From: Epithemia pelagica
Taxonomy: Eukaryota; Protista; Bacillariophyta
Length of the DNA: 64,000 nt
Direction of reading: 5' to 3'
Assembly: GCA_946965045.2 (NCBI GenBank)
Contig: OX337230.1
Location: 2,728,001 to 2,792,000, forward strand
In this document: positions 24,629-40,936 of the stretch, one piece after another
Numbering within the stretch: position 1 is the stretch's first letter
Layout of the letters: each line of letters opens with the position of its first letter
The notes under the pieces: model-generated
Databases searched by the model: none
Seen by the model: only the letters and a program-made list of their open reading frames with translations
What the model was told of the DNA's origin: nothing
Program-made: the position numbers and the translations under genes

Positions 24629-24645
24629 CGATGAGACTGTTAATC
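24629..24645 (-). other. Copia-1 primer-binding site (GATTAACAGTCTCATCG)
   Basis: Abuts the 5' LTR. An identical 17-mer abuts the Copia-2 5' LTR (30208-30224). Confidence 0.8.
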
Positions 24646-25403
24646 TGATAAACTTCTCTCGATTCAACAGGGGTTAGACAGATAGTTAGGATAGGTAAAA
24701 GGCTCGCTGAGCCGACAATCGAATCACCAACCGATACAACAATCCTCCACGGGTCAGAGAAGAGTTGCAAGTCGAAGTCCGCCGTGGGTGGGGGCAGTCG
24801 GTCCACTGATAAGAGGTAAGTCTTAAGATGAGTGTTAAAATGGTGATATTAATGATTGTGAGACGATTACTAACTAAGGTGGTTGACGGTGCCGAAGTCC
24901 TGGCTCTTGCATACGGCCATGGATCTGGTGTGATAGGTCCTCACTGATTGGAGTAGACCGGCATTGGTGTATATTGAATGTATAGGGTGATGGATAACAT
25001 GTATGGGATGCAACAGCTCTTGCTTTGTCGTGGTATAAGTCTTGTCCTGGGCGCGTTGCTGTTTGCATTCTTGGATTTGTGGGAACAGAGATATGGTCTC
25101 GCGTGATCGTGATTCGTGCTTTGATTACATAGACCGTTAGGTCGAATCGTGGATGCGCGTACTCGGATAGTAGAGGCGCGCACTTGATAGTTTTGGGCGC
25201 GCACGTGTTGGGCCATAGTTAATATCCGAGCGGTCGCCGATAACGCGTGCACTGCGAGCATGCCGTGGCCAAATTTATAGTTTCGCGAGCATGCCGACAT
25301 TCTTTTCTCACTTTTAGGAAAATGTCATCGGATGCCATAAAATACTAGCATCATTCGATGAGTTGTAGGTTTCGCCACCTAGTTTTCGGTGAGAATCCTA
25401 ACA
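24646..25403 (-). repeat. Copia-1 5' LTR
   Basis: Near-identical to 17084-17841. Confidence 0.97.
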
Positions 25404-28500: not shown

Positions 28501-30990
28501 TTGGTATTGGATTCCAAATTAGCAAGATTAGATGTTGGATGATTGACAACAAGATTGGTCACAACTTGAGGAACAAACCGGGGAATCAGATCAGAGAAAT
28601 TGTCTTGACGGTCTTTGGAAGCATCTTGAATTATGTCGTCAATCCGTGTACTACTACCAGGGTCAGGATCAGGTTCTGGATCAATGTCAAGAGTATGCGT
28701 CTGTTCCTTGCATGCAATTGTTGATGCATTCTGGGTAGACTTGTTGTACGCAATGATTACTTGACGACTGTTGTCAGTGAGTTTACTCCACAGATTTCTT
28801 GGAAGACTAATCTTTGGAAGCGAAGATGAATCCTTGGTCTTCATGTTAGTTCTCTTAATCCTGTCGTGCATTTCTTTGGGTGATGGATTGCTGGTATCAA
28901 AATCTTGATCATATTGAAAGTCATGTTGCTTGGTATGCTTACGTTAGTTAGACTTTGGTGATCGAGTTGCTTGGTCATGATCATATGTGGCATCAAGGAG
29001 AAGACAGAAATATGATTGATAACAAAGTGTCTTTGCACCAGACAAGATGTTGACTTGTCGTAAATCAGGTACCTTTTCAACGGCTTTCATCAGGAAGGTC
29101 ATCCTAGTGGAGTGGCCAGGAATGTGATCAAACATTGATCCCAGATTGTCGAGAAGATGGAATTGGTGTTGAAAGTGGAGAAGAAACTGATAGGTTGTGC
29201 CGTGCCATGAATCATCGAGACAAAGATTGGAGATGTAGTTGTTAAGACGTAACACCTCTCTTTTTGCTAAACGAAATGACGAAATCCAACCTTGGTTCAG
29301 GCAAAGCTTGGTGAAGTCTGCATTGATTCTCCAATGATCGTAATCCGCCTTGGTGAGGTTCAACCAGGTTGAACGGGATATATCACACTGCTGCAGGGTT
29401 GAGGTTTGTTCTCGTGACCAATATGCTAGGATCTTCAGTTGATGCCTTGTATACGTCTTCAGGTTCATCGTCTTGTTCCCATACTTGTATTGTCCAAGGT
29501 CCTTGATATTCTTTTCTGGATTGACTGCAAGATAGTCGATGACATTCAGAATGTGTTCGAAACCACTATGTTTTATCCATTGATGAAGGGCTTGAGCTTG
29601 TTCCTCATCACATTCAAATAGATGCTGGGTGATATGATTGAACACTTGTGTATCTGATATGTCAGGCGGTACTGAGTCGTCAGAAGGAAGAGAAGGTGTC
29701 TTGGGGTATGTTGGATCCATGGTAGTATATGGTTGGTTCGTTGTTTATTTAATGTGTGGTGTGATCTGAACCCGGATGTACCACGTGTGTGCCACGTATG
29801 TAAGTACCCGGATGTGTGTTGTGCTGGGAACCCGGATGTGCGGAACTCGGTTTTGTCTCTGGTTTGTTGTGGAAACTACTTAAAGATACTTATCCTTGGT
29901 CACTTCCGGACTCGTTGCGGTGATCGAGTTGAACCGGGGAGTCAGGAATAATGGTAGCTTCCTCGTCTTGCTCGTAGTCCTAAGCAAAGTACTGGTCAGG
30001 TGAGTATTGGGAAGGTAGTTGCACGAAGTCCTGGTCCAGCTTGAGGTCCTGGAATAGGAGAGGGTTGATGACCCTAGCCTTAGCCAGGCTGGCCCTGTTG
30101 TTGGGTTGGGTAGCTTTGTCCTCTAACTCTTGTTTGTTGGTGTAGCTCAATCTGTACTCAATGTAGATGGGTAAGTATGATCTCCAATGCGACTGCAGGG
30201 CAATGAGCGATGAGACTGTTAATCTGGCAGAACTCTCATTGAGAATTCAGAAGGGTAATAGGCAGATAGGTAGGATAGGTAAAAGGCTCGCTGAGCCGAC
30301 AATCGAATCACCAACCGATACAACAATCCTCCACGGGTCAGAGAAGAGTTGCAAGTCGAAGTCTGCCGTGGGTGGGGGCAGTCGGTCCACTGATAAGAGG
30401 TTAGTCTTAAGATGAGTGTTAAAATGGTGATATTAATGATTGTGAGATGATTACTAACTAAGGTGTTTGATGAAGGTCGAGGTCCTGGCTCCTGTATACG
30501 GCCATGGATCTGGTGTGATAGGTCCTCAAATGGTTGGAGTAGACCTGCATTGTTGTATCGAAAGTATATGCAGTTGTATATCATATACCAATGCCAACAG
30601 CTCTTGCTTTGTTGTGATATAGGTAGTTTTCTTGGCGCGTTGTTGATTGCATTCTTGGAATTGTGGGAATGGAAATATGGTCTCGCGTGATCGTGATTCG
30701 TGCTTTGATTACTTAGGTCGTTGAGGTAAGTCGTGGAGGTGCTCACTCGGATCGTGATTGCGCGCGCTTGAGAATACTGGGCGCGCACGTGATGGGCCAT
30801 AGTCAATATCCGAGCGGTCGCCGATAGCGCGTGCATTGCGAGCATGCCTTGGCCAAAATTATAGGTCCGCGAGCATGCCGTCATTCTTTTCTCACTTTTA
30901 CACAAATGTCATCGGATGCCATAAAATACTAGCATCAGTCGATGTGTTGTAGATTCCACCATCACCTAGTTAAAGGTGAGAATCCTAACA
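25588..30990 (-). mobile_element. Copia-2: non-autonomous, internally deleted relative of Copia-1
   Basis: 766-bp LTRs (25588-26353, 30225-30990) with 1 substitution seen; TSD CCTCT (25583-25587, 30991-30995). Internal gag/IN/RT remnants are homologous to Copia-1, with deletions, stops and frameshifts. Confidence 0.95.
26354..29720 (-). pseudogene. Copia-2 degenerate gag-pol
   Basis: ORFs 28944-29720 (gag), 26727-28871 (IN remnants, YNVLVDWE-like motif) and 26452-26787 (RT remnant KADPNVWMKKAPG). Confidence 0.9.
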
Positions 30991-31294
30991 CCTCTGTTTG
31001 TGGTATTAACGTGACGTCCTCTCCTTTCCCATACGATCCCCAATCCTCTTTCAAGTTTTGATGTAATCTGCAGGTGTACTAACATCCATAATTAAGAAAT
31101 CGAGGATCTATCACTTATTGTAGTTTGTATTACTACTACCATGCAATCTGTTCACATATAATTAAGACGCACGGCTGTGCGCGCGAAAGACGGTGATGGT
31201 TCTTGGGGAAGCACGTCAGTGGGATGGCTGGCGACAACGGTTATTGCTGTATTAGATTCTGCCGCTCTCGCCCGCAGAAGTAACTTTGGGTGCA

Positions 31295-34384: not shown

Positions 34385-34729
34385 GTTGTGAGTGGATGAC
34401 AAAACGAGGATCTTTCGTCATGGCGAAGGAAGATCGATCAGTCGTCAAATTGGGGGCGAGGAAACTGTTGAGGATATGTGACCAGGCGACGAGCAGCAGC
34501 GAGCAGACGACGAGTAGCAGCGAGCAAGCAGCGACTCAAGAATGTGATTCGGAAGCAAAGGATCCAAACTTGAATGAGGAAGATGCCGAAGCATGGACTT
34601 TAGTCCGTCGACGTGGCAAAAGCAACATTAGGCAAGATGAACAAGCAAGTGTTCATTCTAAGGAGATTACGTAGTTCGATAAGCCTATAAAGAGTTGCTT
34701 TTACGGCACGGCTTGAGTGAGTTTCAACA

Positions 34730-34743
34730 TAATCTCCTTAGAA
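34730..34743 (+). other. Copia-3 PBS complementary to its own LTR (candidate self-priming site)
   Basis: TAATCTCCTTAGAA is the exact reverse complement of TTCTAAGGAGATTA at 34656-34669. Confidence 0.8.
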
Positions 34744-34790
34744 ATCGAAGCCTTATCTCATATCACAGACTGTGACGGGAACTACGGTAT

Positions 34791-35462
34791 ATGAGCGAGA
34801 GACTTGAAGCGCGTTGGCAAGATATATTGGCTCAATTGGCTCGGCTGACTCTCGAGGAACAAGAAGAGGTACACGCAATTGAAGAGCGCTTTCAACAAGA
34901 ATACCGAAGAAGAGAAGCTCAACACCGTCAAACGGTGGCGGCACTTGAGCGTCAACGAGAAACGGATCGTGACAACGCATACGACGAGTGTGAGATTCGG
35001 AAGCAACTTGTGTTTGAAAAAGCTCAAGCAAAACGTGACAGCTTGTTGAGAGAAATCCAATACTTCGACGAGGACAAGACACCTGCCCCAGAACCCCGGT
35101 CAACTACACCGGATCCACCGCAACCATCAAGACAGGCAACGCCAGAACCAGAGGTAAAACAGATAGCTGGGCCAAGATCCCAAAACAGTACGCCTCAATC
35201 TCAAACAAGTCATCCAGTGCAAGTCGCACAGCCTCCTTCAATCGCATCGCAAAGAAACAGCCCCATCAGGTGGATCCCAATTGGAACTAGAGTGTGGGTA
35301 CTCAATTCCCTCAAGTTGAAGAATCAAACCTCCACCACCTATCTTGAAGGAGTCATATCGAGACACGGTAGTTTCTACCACTTCATACGCATTTGGAATC
35401 CCTCTACGGGGAAACACGAAGAACATCGTCGACACCGAGACAGCCTAGCTGTAATCGAATAA
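34791..35462 (+). CDS. Copia-3 extra upstream ORF, 223 aa (coiled coil, Pro-rich linker, SH3/KOW-like C-terminus)
   Basis: Intact ATG-TAA ORF whose stop lies 1 nt before the gag ATG. Confidence 0.72.
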   Translation: MSERLEARWQDILAQLARLTLEEQEEVHAIEERFQQEYRRREAQHRQTVAALERQRETDRDNAYDECEIRKQLVFEKAQAKRDSLLREIQYFDEDKTPAPEPRSTTPDPPQPSRQATPEPEVKQIAGPRSQNSTPQSQTSHPVQVAQPPSIASQRNSPIRWIPIGTRVWVLNSLKLKNQTSTTYLEGVISRHGSFYHFIRIWNPSTGKHEEHRRHRDSLAVIE

Positions 35463-35463
35463 G

Positions 35464-38400
35464 ATGTCGACTGGTGGAAACGGCCCTCGGCCGGATGGAG
35501 CAGAATCAAGTGGGGGACGAGGTAATCAAACGGGCGGTCGATCCAATGGAGGCAGAGGACGAGGAGGTCGTGGCAAAAACCAAGGCCAACAATCAAACAC
35601 TCGCTTTCAGGGCCAAGAACCATCGCTGAAAGATTGCGTGTTTGATTATAGTGAAGATCCCCAGTCCAAGCGGTACCTACGCAACGTTGAGTTGTTAGTG
35701 GGCTACGTGGGGACATCATTCGACTACTACAACCTAGAGTATCAAAAGGCACTGGAGAAATTGGAACTTAAAGATCCAGAGAAAGCAAAGGTTCCAGATG
35801 ATCCCACAGACCCCATTCAGATGGAAGAATGGAAAATGGAGTACAAGGCGAGAAAGGATCAAGTGAAGGCCTATCGCAACTTTCGCGCTTCCTTGTTCAG
35901 TGTCATTCTCGGGCAATGCACGCCCCTCATGAAGGATAAGTTGCAAGCCAAACCAGAATATGAAGCGATCAACGATGAAAGGGACGGTGTAGCTCTACTC
36001 AAGTTGATCAAACAAACAACCTTCACGTTTGACTCCGGCCGAATCTACAAGCTGGTCGGTCGTGACAAGTTGAAGGAAGAGTTTTATGGCTTGAAACGCA
36101 GAAACAATCAAACCCTACACAGCTATTATGAAGTGTTTAGGGCAAAAGTGAAAGTTCTCAATGAGGTCGGTGTGGTGTTGTATGACAAAGATCTCGTGGA
36201 GATGATTGCTAAGAAAAACGGAAGGGACCCTCCATCATCTATCGATCGTGACGAAGCACAAGAGAGATGTGTGGCAATCCGATTCATCCGAACATGTGGC
36301 CATCGCGAGTACGAGGCCCATTTGCAAAACATGTTTTTGGACGGCCACAAAGATGTGTACCCTGCCACTCTGGCGGATACAAGGGCAATTCTTGATAACC
36401 GCATGACAGGTAAACAGAAGCAACCGAACCAAAACCAACAGACTCCGACTGAGAATGCCACTGGCATGGCATACCATACACAAGAGTTGGATGACAGCAA
36501 TGAAAGCCAAGCAGCGTCCACATTGACTGGTAACAGCCACATGACAACAAACTCACGACAAACCCAGGGTCGCAATGGGAGTGGCAACAATAGCCGAGGA
36601 AGAGAACAAGCGAGTACAGGCAGCGGTCAATCACGAGGTCATGAATCAAATCAAACACAAACCAACAATAATGGTGAATTGAATGAGACCAATGAATCAA
36701 CCCGCATTCAGGATACGCACCGTGACTCACTTCAATATTCTTTTTCTGCTTCTTCTTCACAGGCTAGCATATCCCCAGAATGGCTACTCCTCGACAACCA
36801 ATCAACTGTAGACATCATCCGAGATTCCACCCTCCTCAAGAACATTCACACAGCCGAGCGCCCAATCATGATCCAAAGTCACGCTGGGCGACGTCAAATT
36901 TCCAAACAAGGCCTACTCCCCGGATATGGCATCGTCTGGCATGACCCGGAAGGGCCGGCCAACATCATATCACTCAATAATGCACGCACAAGGTTCTCAA
37001 TCAAGTATGACAGCGAGAACGGGAACACCTTCAATCTCTTCGACCGATCTTCAGGGCGACTCAAACACCAATTCCTGCCAAGTCAAGACGGTTTGTTCTA
37101 TATGGATACGTCAAGAATGCAGAGTAGTTTCATCACTACGGTTAATGATAATGAATCTGCTTATTCTCAAGACGAAGTCTATAGAGCTAAACTGGCACGA
37201 TCATTAATGGCCAAGATAGGTCGTCCATCCACACGTGATTTCGTACACATCATACGAAACAATCTGTTGCCGAACACAACTATCACTGTGGACGACGTCA
37301 AGAGGGCCGAGAAAACATACGGACCAGACCTTGGGAGTCTCAAGGGCAAGACGACGCGTCGTAAATCTCCTGTGGTTGACTCGTCACAGACCGTGCCACC
37401 ACGGATCAAAGAAGAACACAAGGATGTGACACTCACTGTTGATATTCTCCACGTCAACAACATTCCTTTCCTCGCAACGACGTCAAGGAAGTTGCATTTT
37501 GGGACTATGGAAGCAATGGCCAATACCACCGACGATGATGTCATGAACTCGTTGCGCAGAGTGGTTGCGATCTATCGCAGAGGTGGCTTGCGCCCGCGGA
37601 TGTTGCTCGCGGACGGAGCCTTCTGTTCCGAAAAGATGAAGACAGAGTTGCAATTGATCGGTGTGTTGTTAAACCCTACCGCAAGAGATGAACATGTGGG
37701 AGACATTGAAAGGTACATACGTACAGTAAAAGAAAGAATGAGATGTGTTTATAACACCCTACCATTCAAAGAAATCCCGAAGGTCATGATCATTGAGATG
37801 GCCAAATTCGCTACCTTCTGGCTAAATAGTTTTCCTCATCGGTTGGGGATTTCACAATCAGAAAGCCCACGACTGCTCGTCACGGGAGAACAGGTCGACT
37901 TCAACAAGCACTGTCGCTTCGAATTTGGACAGTACGTCCAATGCCATGAAGAGCATGACAACTCGATGGCGCCCAGGACCATAGGTGCTCTAGCATTGAG
38001 GCCTACTGGGAATCGTCAGGGTAGTTATTATTTTTTGAGTCTTGTCAGCGGACGAGTCATAACACGGAATCACGCCACAGCCCTACCGATGCCCCAAGAA
38101 GTGATCCAACGTGTGCACCAATTGGCTAGAGCCCAAAATATGCAACCAGGGTTAGCTTTCGGTAATAGAGACAATCGGATTTTGTGGATGGATCAAGACA
38201 ACGACCTTTACAACGAAGAAGACGATGAATCCTACATCAATGAAGAACAGGATGACATCGAGCTACGCTATGATGATGATATGATCGAAAATGAACTGGT
38301 GGATGCCGTCAACAATCCCGACTATGTTGACCATGAAGAAGATGTCAACGGCGAACCTGCAATCAACCCGATGTTTGGTCCCGATGATCAACACATGGAA

Positions 38401-38689
38401 ATTCAAGGAGTGGGTGACCCACTAGCCGGAGAACTTGACGATCTGAACGGTCCGGAAATTGAAGGAGTGGAGGCAGATGGAGAACTGCCAATCCATCCTA
38501 TGGCAGAAGATGATGGTAGTGTAGTCCCGGAGGAGGCAGTGATGGATGTGGAGGAGGATGTGGGGGATAATAGGGGGGAGCTAGCCGGTGGAGAGGATAT
38601 GGAAGAGGGACAAGACATACAAGACATTGACGCTAATGACGCTAATGAAGGTACCGAAGATAACAGTGAGGCTGATCCGGTACGTCAGC

Positions 38690-38720
<31 letters not shown>

Positions 38721-40725
38721 CAGGTACAATCTACGACCAAATCGCGAAAGGAGCTACGCGCACCGATACGGGCACTCGTTTGCCTGCATCGATACTCTAA
38801 AAGGAGGGCGTTATGATGGAATCCTGCGAGATGGAGTGTTGTTTCTCGTAGCGAGTGAGGTGAATCATGCCACACCGCAGATGCCTATGAAGAAGGGTAT
38901 CAAACTGTTTGGAAACAAGGGAGTGGCCGCCGTGAAGGTGGAAATCCAACAATTACATGATAGAGGAGTCTTGAGGGCAGTACACAAAACTGACCTCAGC
39001 TGGAATGAGGTGCAACAAGCACTAGGTTACCTAATGTTTTTGAAACGAAAACGGTGTGGCAAGATTAAAGGAAGAGGCTGTGCCGACGGACGCAAACAAC
39101 GTGCGTACATAGAGAAGGAAGATTCGGCTTCTCCTACCGTGGCCACCGATTCTGTATTCATCACTGCCGTCATTGACGCCCTAGAACGACGTGTGGTTGC
39201 TGTGGCAGACATCCCAGGTGCGTTTATGCACTCGGATATGGATCCTGGCGTGTATATGCGGCTTACTGGACTAATGGCTGAGCTACTCCTAGAAGTCGAC
39301 CATGAAGCATATGCCCCATATCTAACATATGAGAAGGGCGAGCCGGTTATATACGTGGAAATGTTGAAGGCTCTCTACGGGACGTTGCGTGCAGCTCGTC
39401 TCTTCTGGGAAAAATTGACCGTGGTGCTCAAAAGTTGGGGATTTCAAATCAACCCCTATGATTCATGCGTTGCCAACAAAACAATCAACAACAAACAATG
39501 CACGGTAACTTGGCACATTGACGATCTGAAAATATCGCATGTGGACGGTGCCGTTGTAAACAAATTTATTGAGGACCTCAAAGCAGAGTTCGGCCAGTTG
39601 GGAGAAATCTCTGTGTCGGAAGGGACAAGGCACGACTATTTGGGCATGTTCTTAGACTATGGAGAGGATGGGGTTGTGCAGGTGGACATGCGATCCTACC
39701 TAGACACCATTTTGATCTCGCTACCAAAAGAATGGATCGGTAAAGCACGGTCACCGGCTGCTAAGCATTTATATCATACGGACCCGAACTCTCGAAAACT
39801 CAATGAGGAGGAGGCGGATCGATTCCACAGTGTAACAATGCAGTTAGCGTACATGGCGCAAAGAGGACGCCCAGATATACGCACTGCTGTGGCCTTTTTG
39901 AGCACTCGTGTCATGAATCCAGACGTTGACGATCAGAGAAAACTCGGTCGGGTTCTCAAGTACCTACAATCAACCAAGGATCTGATCCTACGACTAGAGG
40001 GTGATGGATCTGGACCACTATGTTGGTGGGTGGATGCCTCCTTCGCTACTCACCCAGACATGAAAGGACAGACCGGCGGAGTAATGACTATGGGCAAGGG
40101 TGCCGTCATGACTGCCTCATCAAAACAAAAACTTGTGGCGCGAAGTTCAACCGAATGTGAATTGATAGGCGTGCACGACGTGTTGCCGTCAATGTTATGG
40201 AGCCAGAACTTTCTGAGAGCCCAAGGACATGAAGTAAAGAACGTTGTCCTGCACCAGGACAATCAGAGCAGTATCCTACTGGAACGAAACGGTCGGTTGT
40301 CGAGCTCGAAAAGAACCAAACACATCAATCTACGATATTTCTATATCACAGATTGTATTCGCCGAAAGGACGTGAATGTGCGTTTCTGTCCGACGGATGA
40401 GATGATCGCTGACTTCTTTACTAAACCATTGCAGGGTCAAGCTTTTTATCGCCTGCGGGATATCATCATGAATGTGGTCCCGAGTAGTAAGTACCACTCC
40501 TCGGCCCAAAGGAGTGTGTTGAGGATATGTGACCAGGCGACGAGCAGCAGCGAGCAGACGACGAGTAGCAGCGAGCAAGCAGCGACTCAAGAATGTGATT
40601 CGGAAGCAAAGGATCCAAACTTGAATGAGGAAGATGCCGAAGCATGGACTTTAGTCCGTCGACGTGGCAAAAGCAACATTAGGCAAGATGAACAAGCAAG
40701 TGTTCATTCTAAGGAGATTACGTAG
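35464..40725 (+). CDS. Copia-3 gag-pol polyprotein, 1753 aa
   Basis: RG-rich Gag, protease WLLLDNQST, integrase (TVDILHV, LADGAF, IERYIRTVKER), RT (KGRGCADG, ADIPGAF, KALYG, WHIDD), RNase H (WVDASFA, QDNQS, ADFFTKPL). The ORF runs into the 3' LTR. Confidence 0.97.
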
Positions 40726-40936
40726 TTCGATAAGCCTATAAAGAGTTGCTTTTACGGCACGGCTTGAGTGAGTTTCAACAGAAACTGTGGTCTAAGGTTA
40801 GTCCCGTCAAAGTTTATCGTTCTGATGAAAATGGATGGCTTGGAAAATGAGTCGCACAAAATGCCTCGATGCCCGAAATGATATCTACGGTATGTGGACT
40901 TCTCCCCCTTTTCAAGATTTTTCATATTTTCGACGT

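Follow-up and report, generated by a model that had tools for sequence, protein, structure and literature searches.

An intact Ty1/copia-type LTR retrotransposon in the genome of Epithemia pelagica, similar to the CoDi elements of diatoms, carries immediately behind its 5′ LTR fourteen nucleotides that are perfectly complementary to a segment inside that LTR. The best reading of this arrangement, to which we give a probability of about 0.8, is that minus-strand DNA synthesis is primed by the 5′ end of the element's own transcript, as in Tf1. The element lies within the window analyzed here, a stretch of 64,000 nt covering positions 2,728,001–2,792,000 of contig OX337230.1 (assembly GCA_946965045.2). 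A first-pass annotation had proposed such Tf1-like self-priming in place of a tRNA primer-binding site (PBS), and this core proposal is supported by covariation between LTR and PBS in 13 elements from four sources.

The predicted PBS, TAATCTCCTTAGAA, occupies positions 34730–34743 on the plus strand and starts at the first base past the 5′ LTR (offset 0), the LTR end that defines this offset being set by a 5-bp target-site duplication. It is the exact reverse complement (14/14) of TTCTAAGGAGATTA at 34656–34669 on the same strand, the predicted self-primer; an anchored 14-nt match in a 264-nt LTR is expected by chance with a frequency of about 9e-7. The polarity is suited to priming, as the LTR segment ends in a 3′ A that pairs with T34730 and faces U5, and the primer arm is immediately preceded by the trinucleotide TCA with its A at 34655. 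Coordinates and sequence of this complement, as given in the first-pass annotation, were re-verified; that TGG is missing from the start of the PBS, that TCATTC with A at 34655 stands ahead of the LTR 14-mer, and that the two LTRs are identical was likewise found to be so. Additional pairings between LTR and leader had been listed as well, and their motifs are located as described: CGTAGTTC (34670–34677) with GAACTACG (34779–34786), GATAAG (34678–34683) with CTTATC (34752–34757), and GGCTT (34710–34714) with AAGCC (34748–34752). These pairings are, however, changed without compensation in sister copies and unused in the minimum-energy fold, and a hairpin TCACAG-A-CTGTGA, which does exist at 34763–34775, is neither maintained in sister copies nor used in the fold. 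With the leader conserved to only 41–55% and none of these structures present in the 146-nt fold, the three pairings and the hairpin were rejected. An internal stem between AAGCC (34681–34685) and GGCTT (34710–34714) is seen in the fold of R-U5.

The boundaries of the element are marked by two copies of the target-site duplication GAAAC, at 34461–34465 on the left and at 40781–40785 on the right. Between them, all features are encoded on the plus strand. The 5′ LTR (34466–34729) and the 3′ LTR (40517–40780), 264 nt each, run from TGTTGA to TCAACA and differ at 0 positions. Judged from the drop in conservation between sister families upstream of 34653, U3 would extend from 34466 to 34652; it is followed by the initiator-like TCATTCT (34653–34659), which conforms to YCAYTYY, by the predicted self-primer overlapping it, and by the remaining 60 nt of R-U5 (34670–34729), a conserved block that includes GATAAG/TATAAAG at 34678–34692. 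Beyond the PBS lies a poorly conserved leader (34744–34790), whose short LTR complements are uncompensated. The polypurine tract, AAAGGAGTG (40508–40516), abuts the 3′ LTR and is shared by the relatives L092–L102, where (A)AAGGAGTG or CAGGAGTG precedes the 3′ LTR and 5-bp duplications also flank the insertion. The LTR ends (TG...CA), the 5-bp duplication of the target site and the polypurine tract all agree with the features of Ty1/copia elements.

Two open reading frames fill the internal region. The first, ORF1 (34791–35462, 223 aa), matches no Pfam family, contains no CCHC motif and probably represents an additional frame ahead of gag-pol. Its beginning is rich in glutamate and arginine. 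A single base separates its stop from the ATG of ORF2 (TAAGATG), the gag-pol frame of 1753 aa at 35464–40725. The reverse transcriptase (RT) encoded by ORF2 is of the Copia type (Pfam RVT_2, aa 1197–1416, E 1.5e-13), a family also found in its homologues, and a weak match to Retrotran_gag_2 covers aa 202–248. For integrase and protease, neither a Pfam match, even at E 1, nor a PDB sequence match was obtained in this element; the spacing, about 900 aa ahead of the RT and about 340 aa behind it, would suit an integrase placed before the RT. Mayamaea pseudoterrestris and Nitzschia, both diatoms, are the sources of the named homologues. ORF2 enters the 3′ LTR by 209 nt and stops at TAG 40723–40725, so that its last 69 residues are encoded by the LTR, namely by U3 plus some 20 nt at the start of the presumed R. 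At 40707–40720, where the primer sequence occurs for the second time, it therefore doubles as coding sequence for the ORF2 tail (...SKEIT). In L092 and L093, Pol likewise ends within or just past the primer segment of the element's own 3′ LTR. Coding constraint on the 3′ copy could account for part of the conservation of the primer but cannot explain the covariation of the PBS.

Under the proposed mechanism, transcription would begin at the initiator-like TCA, at 34655 or 34656. The RNA would then bend back on itself, with 60 nt of R-U5 forming the loop, so that its first 14–15 nt pair with the PBS (34730–34743). A cut by the element's RNase H after A34669 would free the 3′-hydroxyl of the primer, which, facing the last base of U5, could be extended by the RT through U5 and R. 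The resulting strong-stop DNA, reaching from 34729 to 34670, would subsequently be transferred to the 3′ R. In the established retroviral scheme, plus-strand strong-stop DNA copies the primer. If the same holds here, synthesis of the plus-strand strong-stop DNA would copy the attached RNA primer and rewrite the PBS as its exact complement in every cycle. Two properties of the pairing would follow: since the PBS is rewritten from the primer each time, it should contain no wobble pairs, and since the complement cannot pass the first base of the RNA, it should stop at the initiator motif in every element. Both the site of the cut and the choice of the 5′ copy of the primer over the 3′ copy are inferred here.

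Copies of the element within the same genome (60.5 Mb scanned, 23 contigs) show both the persistence of the pairing and, in one case, a departure from it. In a DNA search, no fewer than 13 members of the family were recovered with a full 5′ end, along with diverged sister families. Every exact genome-wide match to the 14-mer lies within an element copy, and the exact pairs comprise 13 plus/minus pairs of a variant ending in GATTA and 14 of a variant ending in GAATA, with the arms 69–76 nt apart. At least 27 copies in this genome hence have an exact pair, and each adjoins an ORF1 homologue. A third family has TTCAATGGAGAATA in its LTR and a matching PBS of its own, TATTCTCCATTGAA. The exact pair is retained even where ORF1 is only 26–34% identical; over the sister families and related copies, ORF1 homologues are 26–49% identical, compared with 85–96% for R-U5-PBS. 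Along the 5′ region, identity between sister families rises from 49–53% over 34555–34652 to 85–96% from 34653 to the LTR end, amounts to 79–100% in the PBS and falls to 41–55% in the leader. The step at 34653, together with the high identity of the PBS, delimits a conserved block that opens with the initiator-like motif and closes with the PBS. The departure is found in a 99% identical copy on contig C7 (LTRs at C7:3718695 and 3724743, PBS at 3718769; loci L002 and L007), where the last primer base has changed from A to C in both LTRs. The LTRs of this copy read ..GATTC and the PBS still reads TAATC.., the old complement. This state looks like a change that was fixed in the LTRs at the last transposition and that the PBS has yet to follow. 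The mismatch would then stem from a change in the 3′ LTR that reached both progeny LTRs before it reached the PBS, an intermediate predicted by self-priming.

More distant relatives were obtained by tracing Pol homologues to their contigs, which yielded ten further elements, their sources being two assemblies in ENA and a JGI metagenome. When host-gene flanks from the two assemblies were compared with this genome, no DNA match was obtained, indicating that both represent other organisms. Pol RT-RNase H of the ten elements is 51–72% identical to that of the window's element, and their LTR ends are fixed by 5-bp duplications. Each of the ten has its own distinct LTR segment of 14–17 nt, located 46–104 nt before the LTR end and complementary to the first post-LTR bases. 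Examples of these primer segments are TTCTATTGGAAATA, ATTCGATGAGTAAAA, TTCTATCAACAATA, TAATTTCGTAGAGATTA and AGACTTTTAAAATTA, as well as CTCTATAGCGAAAA, GACTTTTAGTTTTA, GTTTTAACTTTAGA and TTCGACGGATAAAA. The complement is exact in all but L101, whose pair now stands at 13/14; its 3′ LTR and PBS show that it was 14/14 at insertion. Taken together, 13 elements from four data sets (Pol RT-RNase H 51–100% identical) present 12 different primer sequences, each matching the PBS of its own element over 14–17 nt and always from the first base past the LTR.

For a formal count of pairs, ten elements were aligned in register (alignment A3); L096 and L100 were omitted because their arms are out of register, their exact pairs being 17 and 14 nt long, respectively. 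In the 14-bp helix of the aligned elements, 12 of the 14 pairs are changed on both sides, 99.3% of the 140 cells are paired, and G-U pairs are absent. Helices slid by 1–3 columns pair in only 35–51% of cells, and none of 500 shuffles (0/500) reaches the observed values. The compensatory covariation between LTR 14-mer and PBS that the first-pass annotation had singled out as a test among homologues is thus present. The primer-PBS duplex, moreover, closes the minimum-energy fold in 10/10 elements, with z-scores of −3.2 to −6.5. The two invariant pairs in A3 (columns 11/106 and 22/95) are a C-G at primer position +4 and an A-U at the primer 3′ end; L096 and L100, outside A3, also have an A at the primer 3′ end. 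These invariant pairs may reflect a preference of the element's RNase H for its cut site. Two additional loci were uninformative as tests of the pairing. L094 of Mayamaea pseudoterrestris (BROI01000014.1) has identical LTRs of 211 nt, 410 nt between LTR and Pol, and a match of just 7 nt (TTTTCTC); a deletion seems to have removed its 5′ internal region and with it most of the PBS. L103, a metagenome scaffold (ENA ERZ28573525), contains a Pol homologue and no recognizable LTR. This scaffold has a direct repeat of 2997 nt (~3 kb) with copies 5355 nt apart and may be an assembly of a tandem or circular-form element.

The sequence in front of the primer arm bears on where the RNA starts and on which copy of the primer is used. 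In 13/13 elements an initiator-like YCA stands 0–1 nt ahead of the arm; in most cases it is part of GCTCA or TCATTC. The oomycete initiator has the consensus YCAYTYY, in which the A is usually the first transcribed base (PMC3599244), and an Inr-like motif TCAH+1W has been described for diatoms (PMC4686930); TCATTCT of the window's element fits both of these stramenopile motifs. We infer from this fit that transcription starts at A34655 or T34656. A search of public runs returned three that hold the element, all as DNA contigs. GATAAG/TATAAAG (34678–34692) is a possible poly(A) signal, and AATAAG or GATAAG just past the primer in many elements may serve the same function. Since the primer sequence is present in both LTRs, self-priming might also be carried out by a copy other than the 5′ end of the same RNA, namely by the 3′ R/U3 copy at 40707–40720, by a co-packaged second RNA, or by a longer transcript that is cut twice. 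The current data fit action in cis or in trans and use of the 5′ or 3′ copy alike. Yet the complement ends at most 1 nt from the initiator-like YCA in all 13 elements, as would be expected for an RNA 5′ end, and the conserved block also starts at the initiator-like motif. We accordingly regard priming by a different copy as improbable.

The obvious competitor of self-priming by the transcript 5′ end is a tRNA primer. Of 1840 tRNA candidates, 63 were scored. The best of 49 distinct tRNAs recovered pairs with the PBS at 10/14 positions, with no run anchored at the primer 3′ end; the absence of a matching host tRNA, which the first-pass annotation had anticipated, was thereby borne out within this set. 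In a genome-wide pattern search for a partner of the PBS, element copies and actin genes alone were found among the matches listed. Four single-mismatch matches on contig C10, GTCTAAGGAGATTA, were considered as tRNAs and proved to lie in tandem actin genes. Four actin copies are arranged there in tandem within ~9 kb (C10:2051923–2061070, L061), and GTCTAAGGAGATTA, which encodes ..MSKEIT.., is common to them and the primer by chance. With no TGG at the start of the PBS and no anchored match in the sampled set, a tRNA primer was rejected.

Two other elements in the window, Copia-1 and Copia-2, behave differently in the same scan. Both lie on the minus strand, with LTRs at 24646–25403 and 30225–30991. 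The PBS of Copia-1, GATTAACAGTCTCA (24629–24645), recurs in Copia-2 beside the LTR at 30225–30991. It has a 14-nt anchored match to positions 27–40 of a nuclear tRNA-Asn(GUU) gene (C1:1271783–1271855), and no complement of it was found in the LTRs of either element. This indicates that Copia-1 and Copia-2 would be primed by half-tRNA-Asn, which would place two priming strategies side by side in the window. The recovery of the tRNA-Asn match demonstrates that the scan is able to detect tRNA priming where it is present.

A further alternative holds that the stem between LTR and PBS was selected for packaging, dimerization or translational control by the leader, and that the primer is some other RNA, for example, an unsampled tRNA fragment. 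A stable stem closing R-U5 is indeed predicted in every element folded, and the tRNA sampling comprised 63/1840 candidates. However, a purely structural stem gives no reason for the pairing to start at the first post-LTR base in 13/13 elements, nor for the complete lack of G-U among 140 cells. Moreover, with 12 different PBS sequences in one clade, a single host RNA cannot serve all of them; TGG is missing, and half-tRNA sites are found by the scan where they exist. We consider this alternative somewhat more doubtful still than priming by a different copy. Lastly, transcription could start downstream, driven by the TATA-like heptamer TATAAAG at 34686, 30–40 nt before the LTR end, which would leave the 14-mer in U3 only and make its match a by-product of LTR history; this is very unlikely, and the heptamer was rejected as promoter, as sister families do not conserve it, it is missing at the equivalent place in L092, L093, L095 and others, R-U5 would shrink to ~12 nt, too short for strand transfer, and the covariation of LTR and PBS would go unexplained.

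Self-priming by the transcript 5′ end thus remains the preferred reading, and it has several implications. Self-priming releases a retrotransposon from its dependence on host tRNA. The diatom clade adds a second Copia clade with predicted self-priming, one that is widespread in diatoms and apparently young, and the comparative signal is unusually clean, with 12 primer sequences each fitting its own PBS. Annotation pipelines that seek a tRNA-complementary PBS would label such elements as lacking a PBS. The pairing of LTR and PBS provides a simple in silico marker of the clade that also predicts the transcription start: if the reading is true, the far edge of the PBS match marks this start in the elements of the clade. 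Half-tRNA-Asn-primed Copia elements next to a Copia element with predicted self-priming in one window would, in addition, offer a natural experimental contrast.

To our knowledge, experimental proof of self-priming is confined to Gypsy elements of the Tf1 type, and for Copia the case consists of sequence-based predictions for a single plant lineage. The Tf1 mRNA folds back at its 5′ end, bringing its first 11 nt onto the PBS, and RNase H then cleaves it between nucleotides 11 and 12 to yield the primer (PMC7175516); Tj1 of S. japonicus has likewise been read as self-priming (PMC4600332). Within Ty1/copia, Neumann et al. (2019) predicted self-priming for the plant TAR lineage and cited a previous suggestion to this effect for Houba and Osr-1 (PMC6317226). 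The novelty of self-priming in Ty1/copia that the first-pass annotation implied was therefore overstated. Our literature search found nothing that ties diatom Copia elements to self-priming, and the paper describing the CoDi elements does not discuss the primer-binding site (PMC2806351).

Several known systems share individual features with the diatom elements. Like the diatom element, Copia elements of the Osser/Bryco and Bianca lineages have a PBS lacking an initial TGG, with half-tRNA-Met assigned to the former and half-tRNA-Ile to the latter (PMC6317226). Their PBS matches an internal tRNA segment, whereas that of the diatom element matches its own LTR and no sampled tRNA. The fungal GalEa elements are also Copia elements without a tRNA PBS and have a conserved inverted repeat, a hairpin, in the place of the PBS; no LTR complement was found by the authors (PMC5445492). 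The repeat of GalEa is a local palindrome by the LTR end, in contrast to the diatom partner sequence, which is situated within the LTR, 46–104 nt further upstream, where the RNA is predicted to start. The TAR elements Houba and Osr-1 resemble the diatom clade in being Ty1/copia elements with a predicted self-complementary PBS. However, TAR is a lineage of land plants, and the named relatives of the diatom clade are from Mayamaea and Nitzschia. In Tf1 and Tf2 of Schizosaccharomyces pombe and in Tj1, as is predicted for the diatom element, the PBS adjoins the 5′ LTR and complements the start of the element's own mRNA, and no tRNA is involved. Members of Tf1/sushi (Ty3/gypsy) are defined by RVT_1 and a chromodomain integrase that follows the RT; the diatom element has an RVT_2 RT and 5-bp duplications and is not a chromovirus. 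Its RVT_2 RT makes it Tf1-like in its predicted working, yet places it outside the Tf1/sushi lineage. The length of the pairing differs as well, with 14–17 nt predicted from sequence in the diatom clade versus 11 nt in Tf1. It is conceivable, at odds that we would put a little below even, that a clade of diatom Ty1/copia elements gave up tRNA priming and primes itself with the capped first 14–17 nt of its RNA, having come to do so separately from Tf1/sushi and from the TAR lineage of plants.
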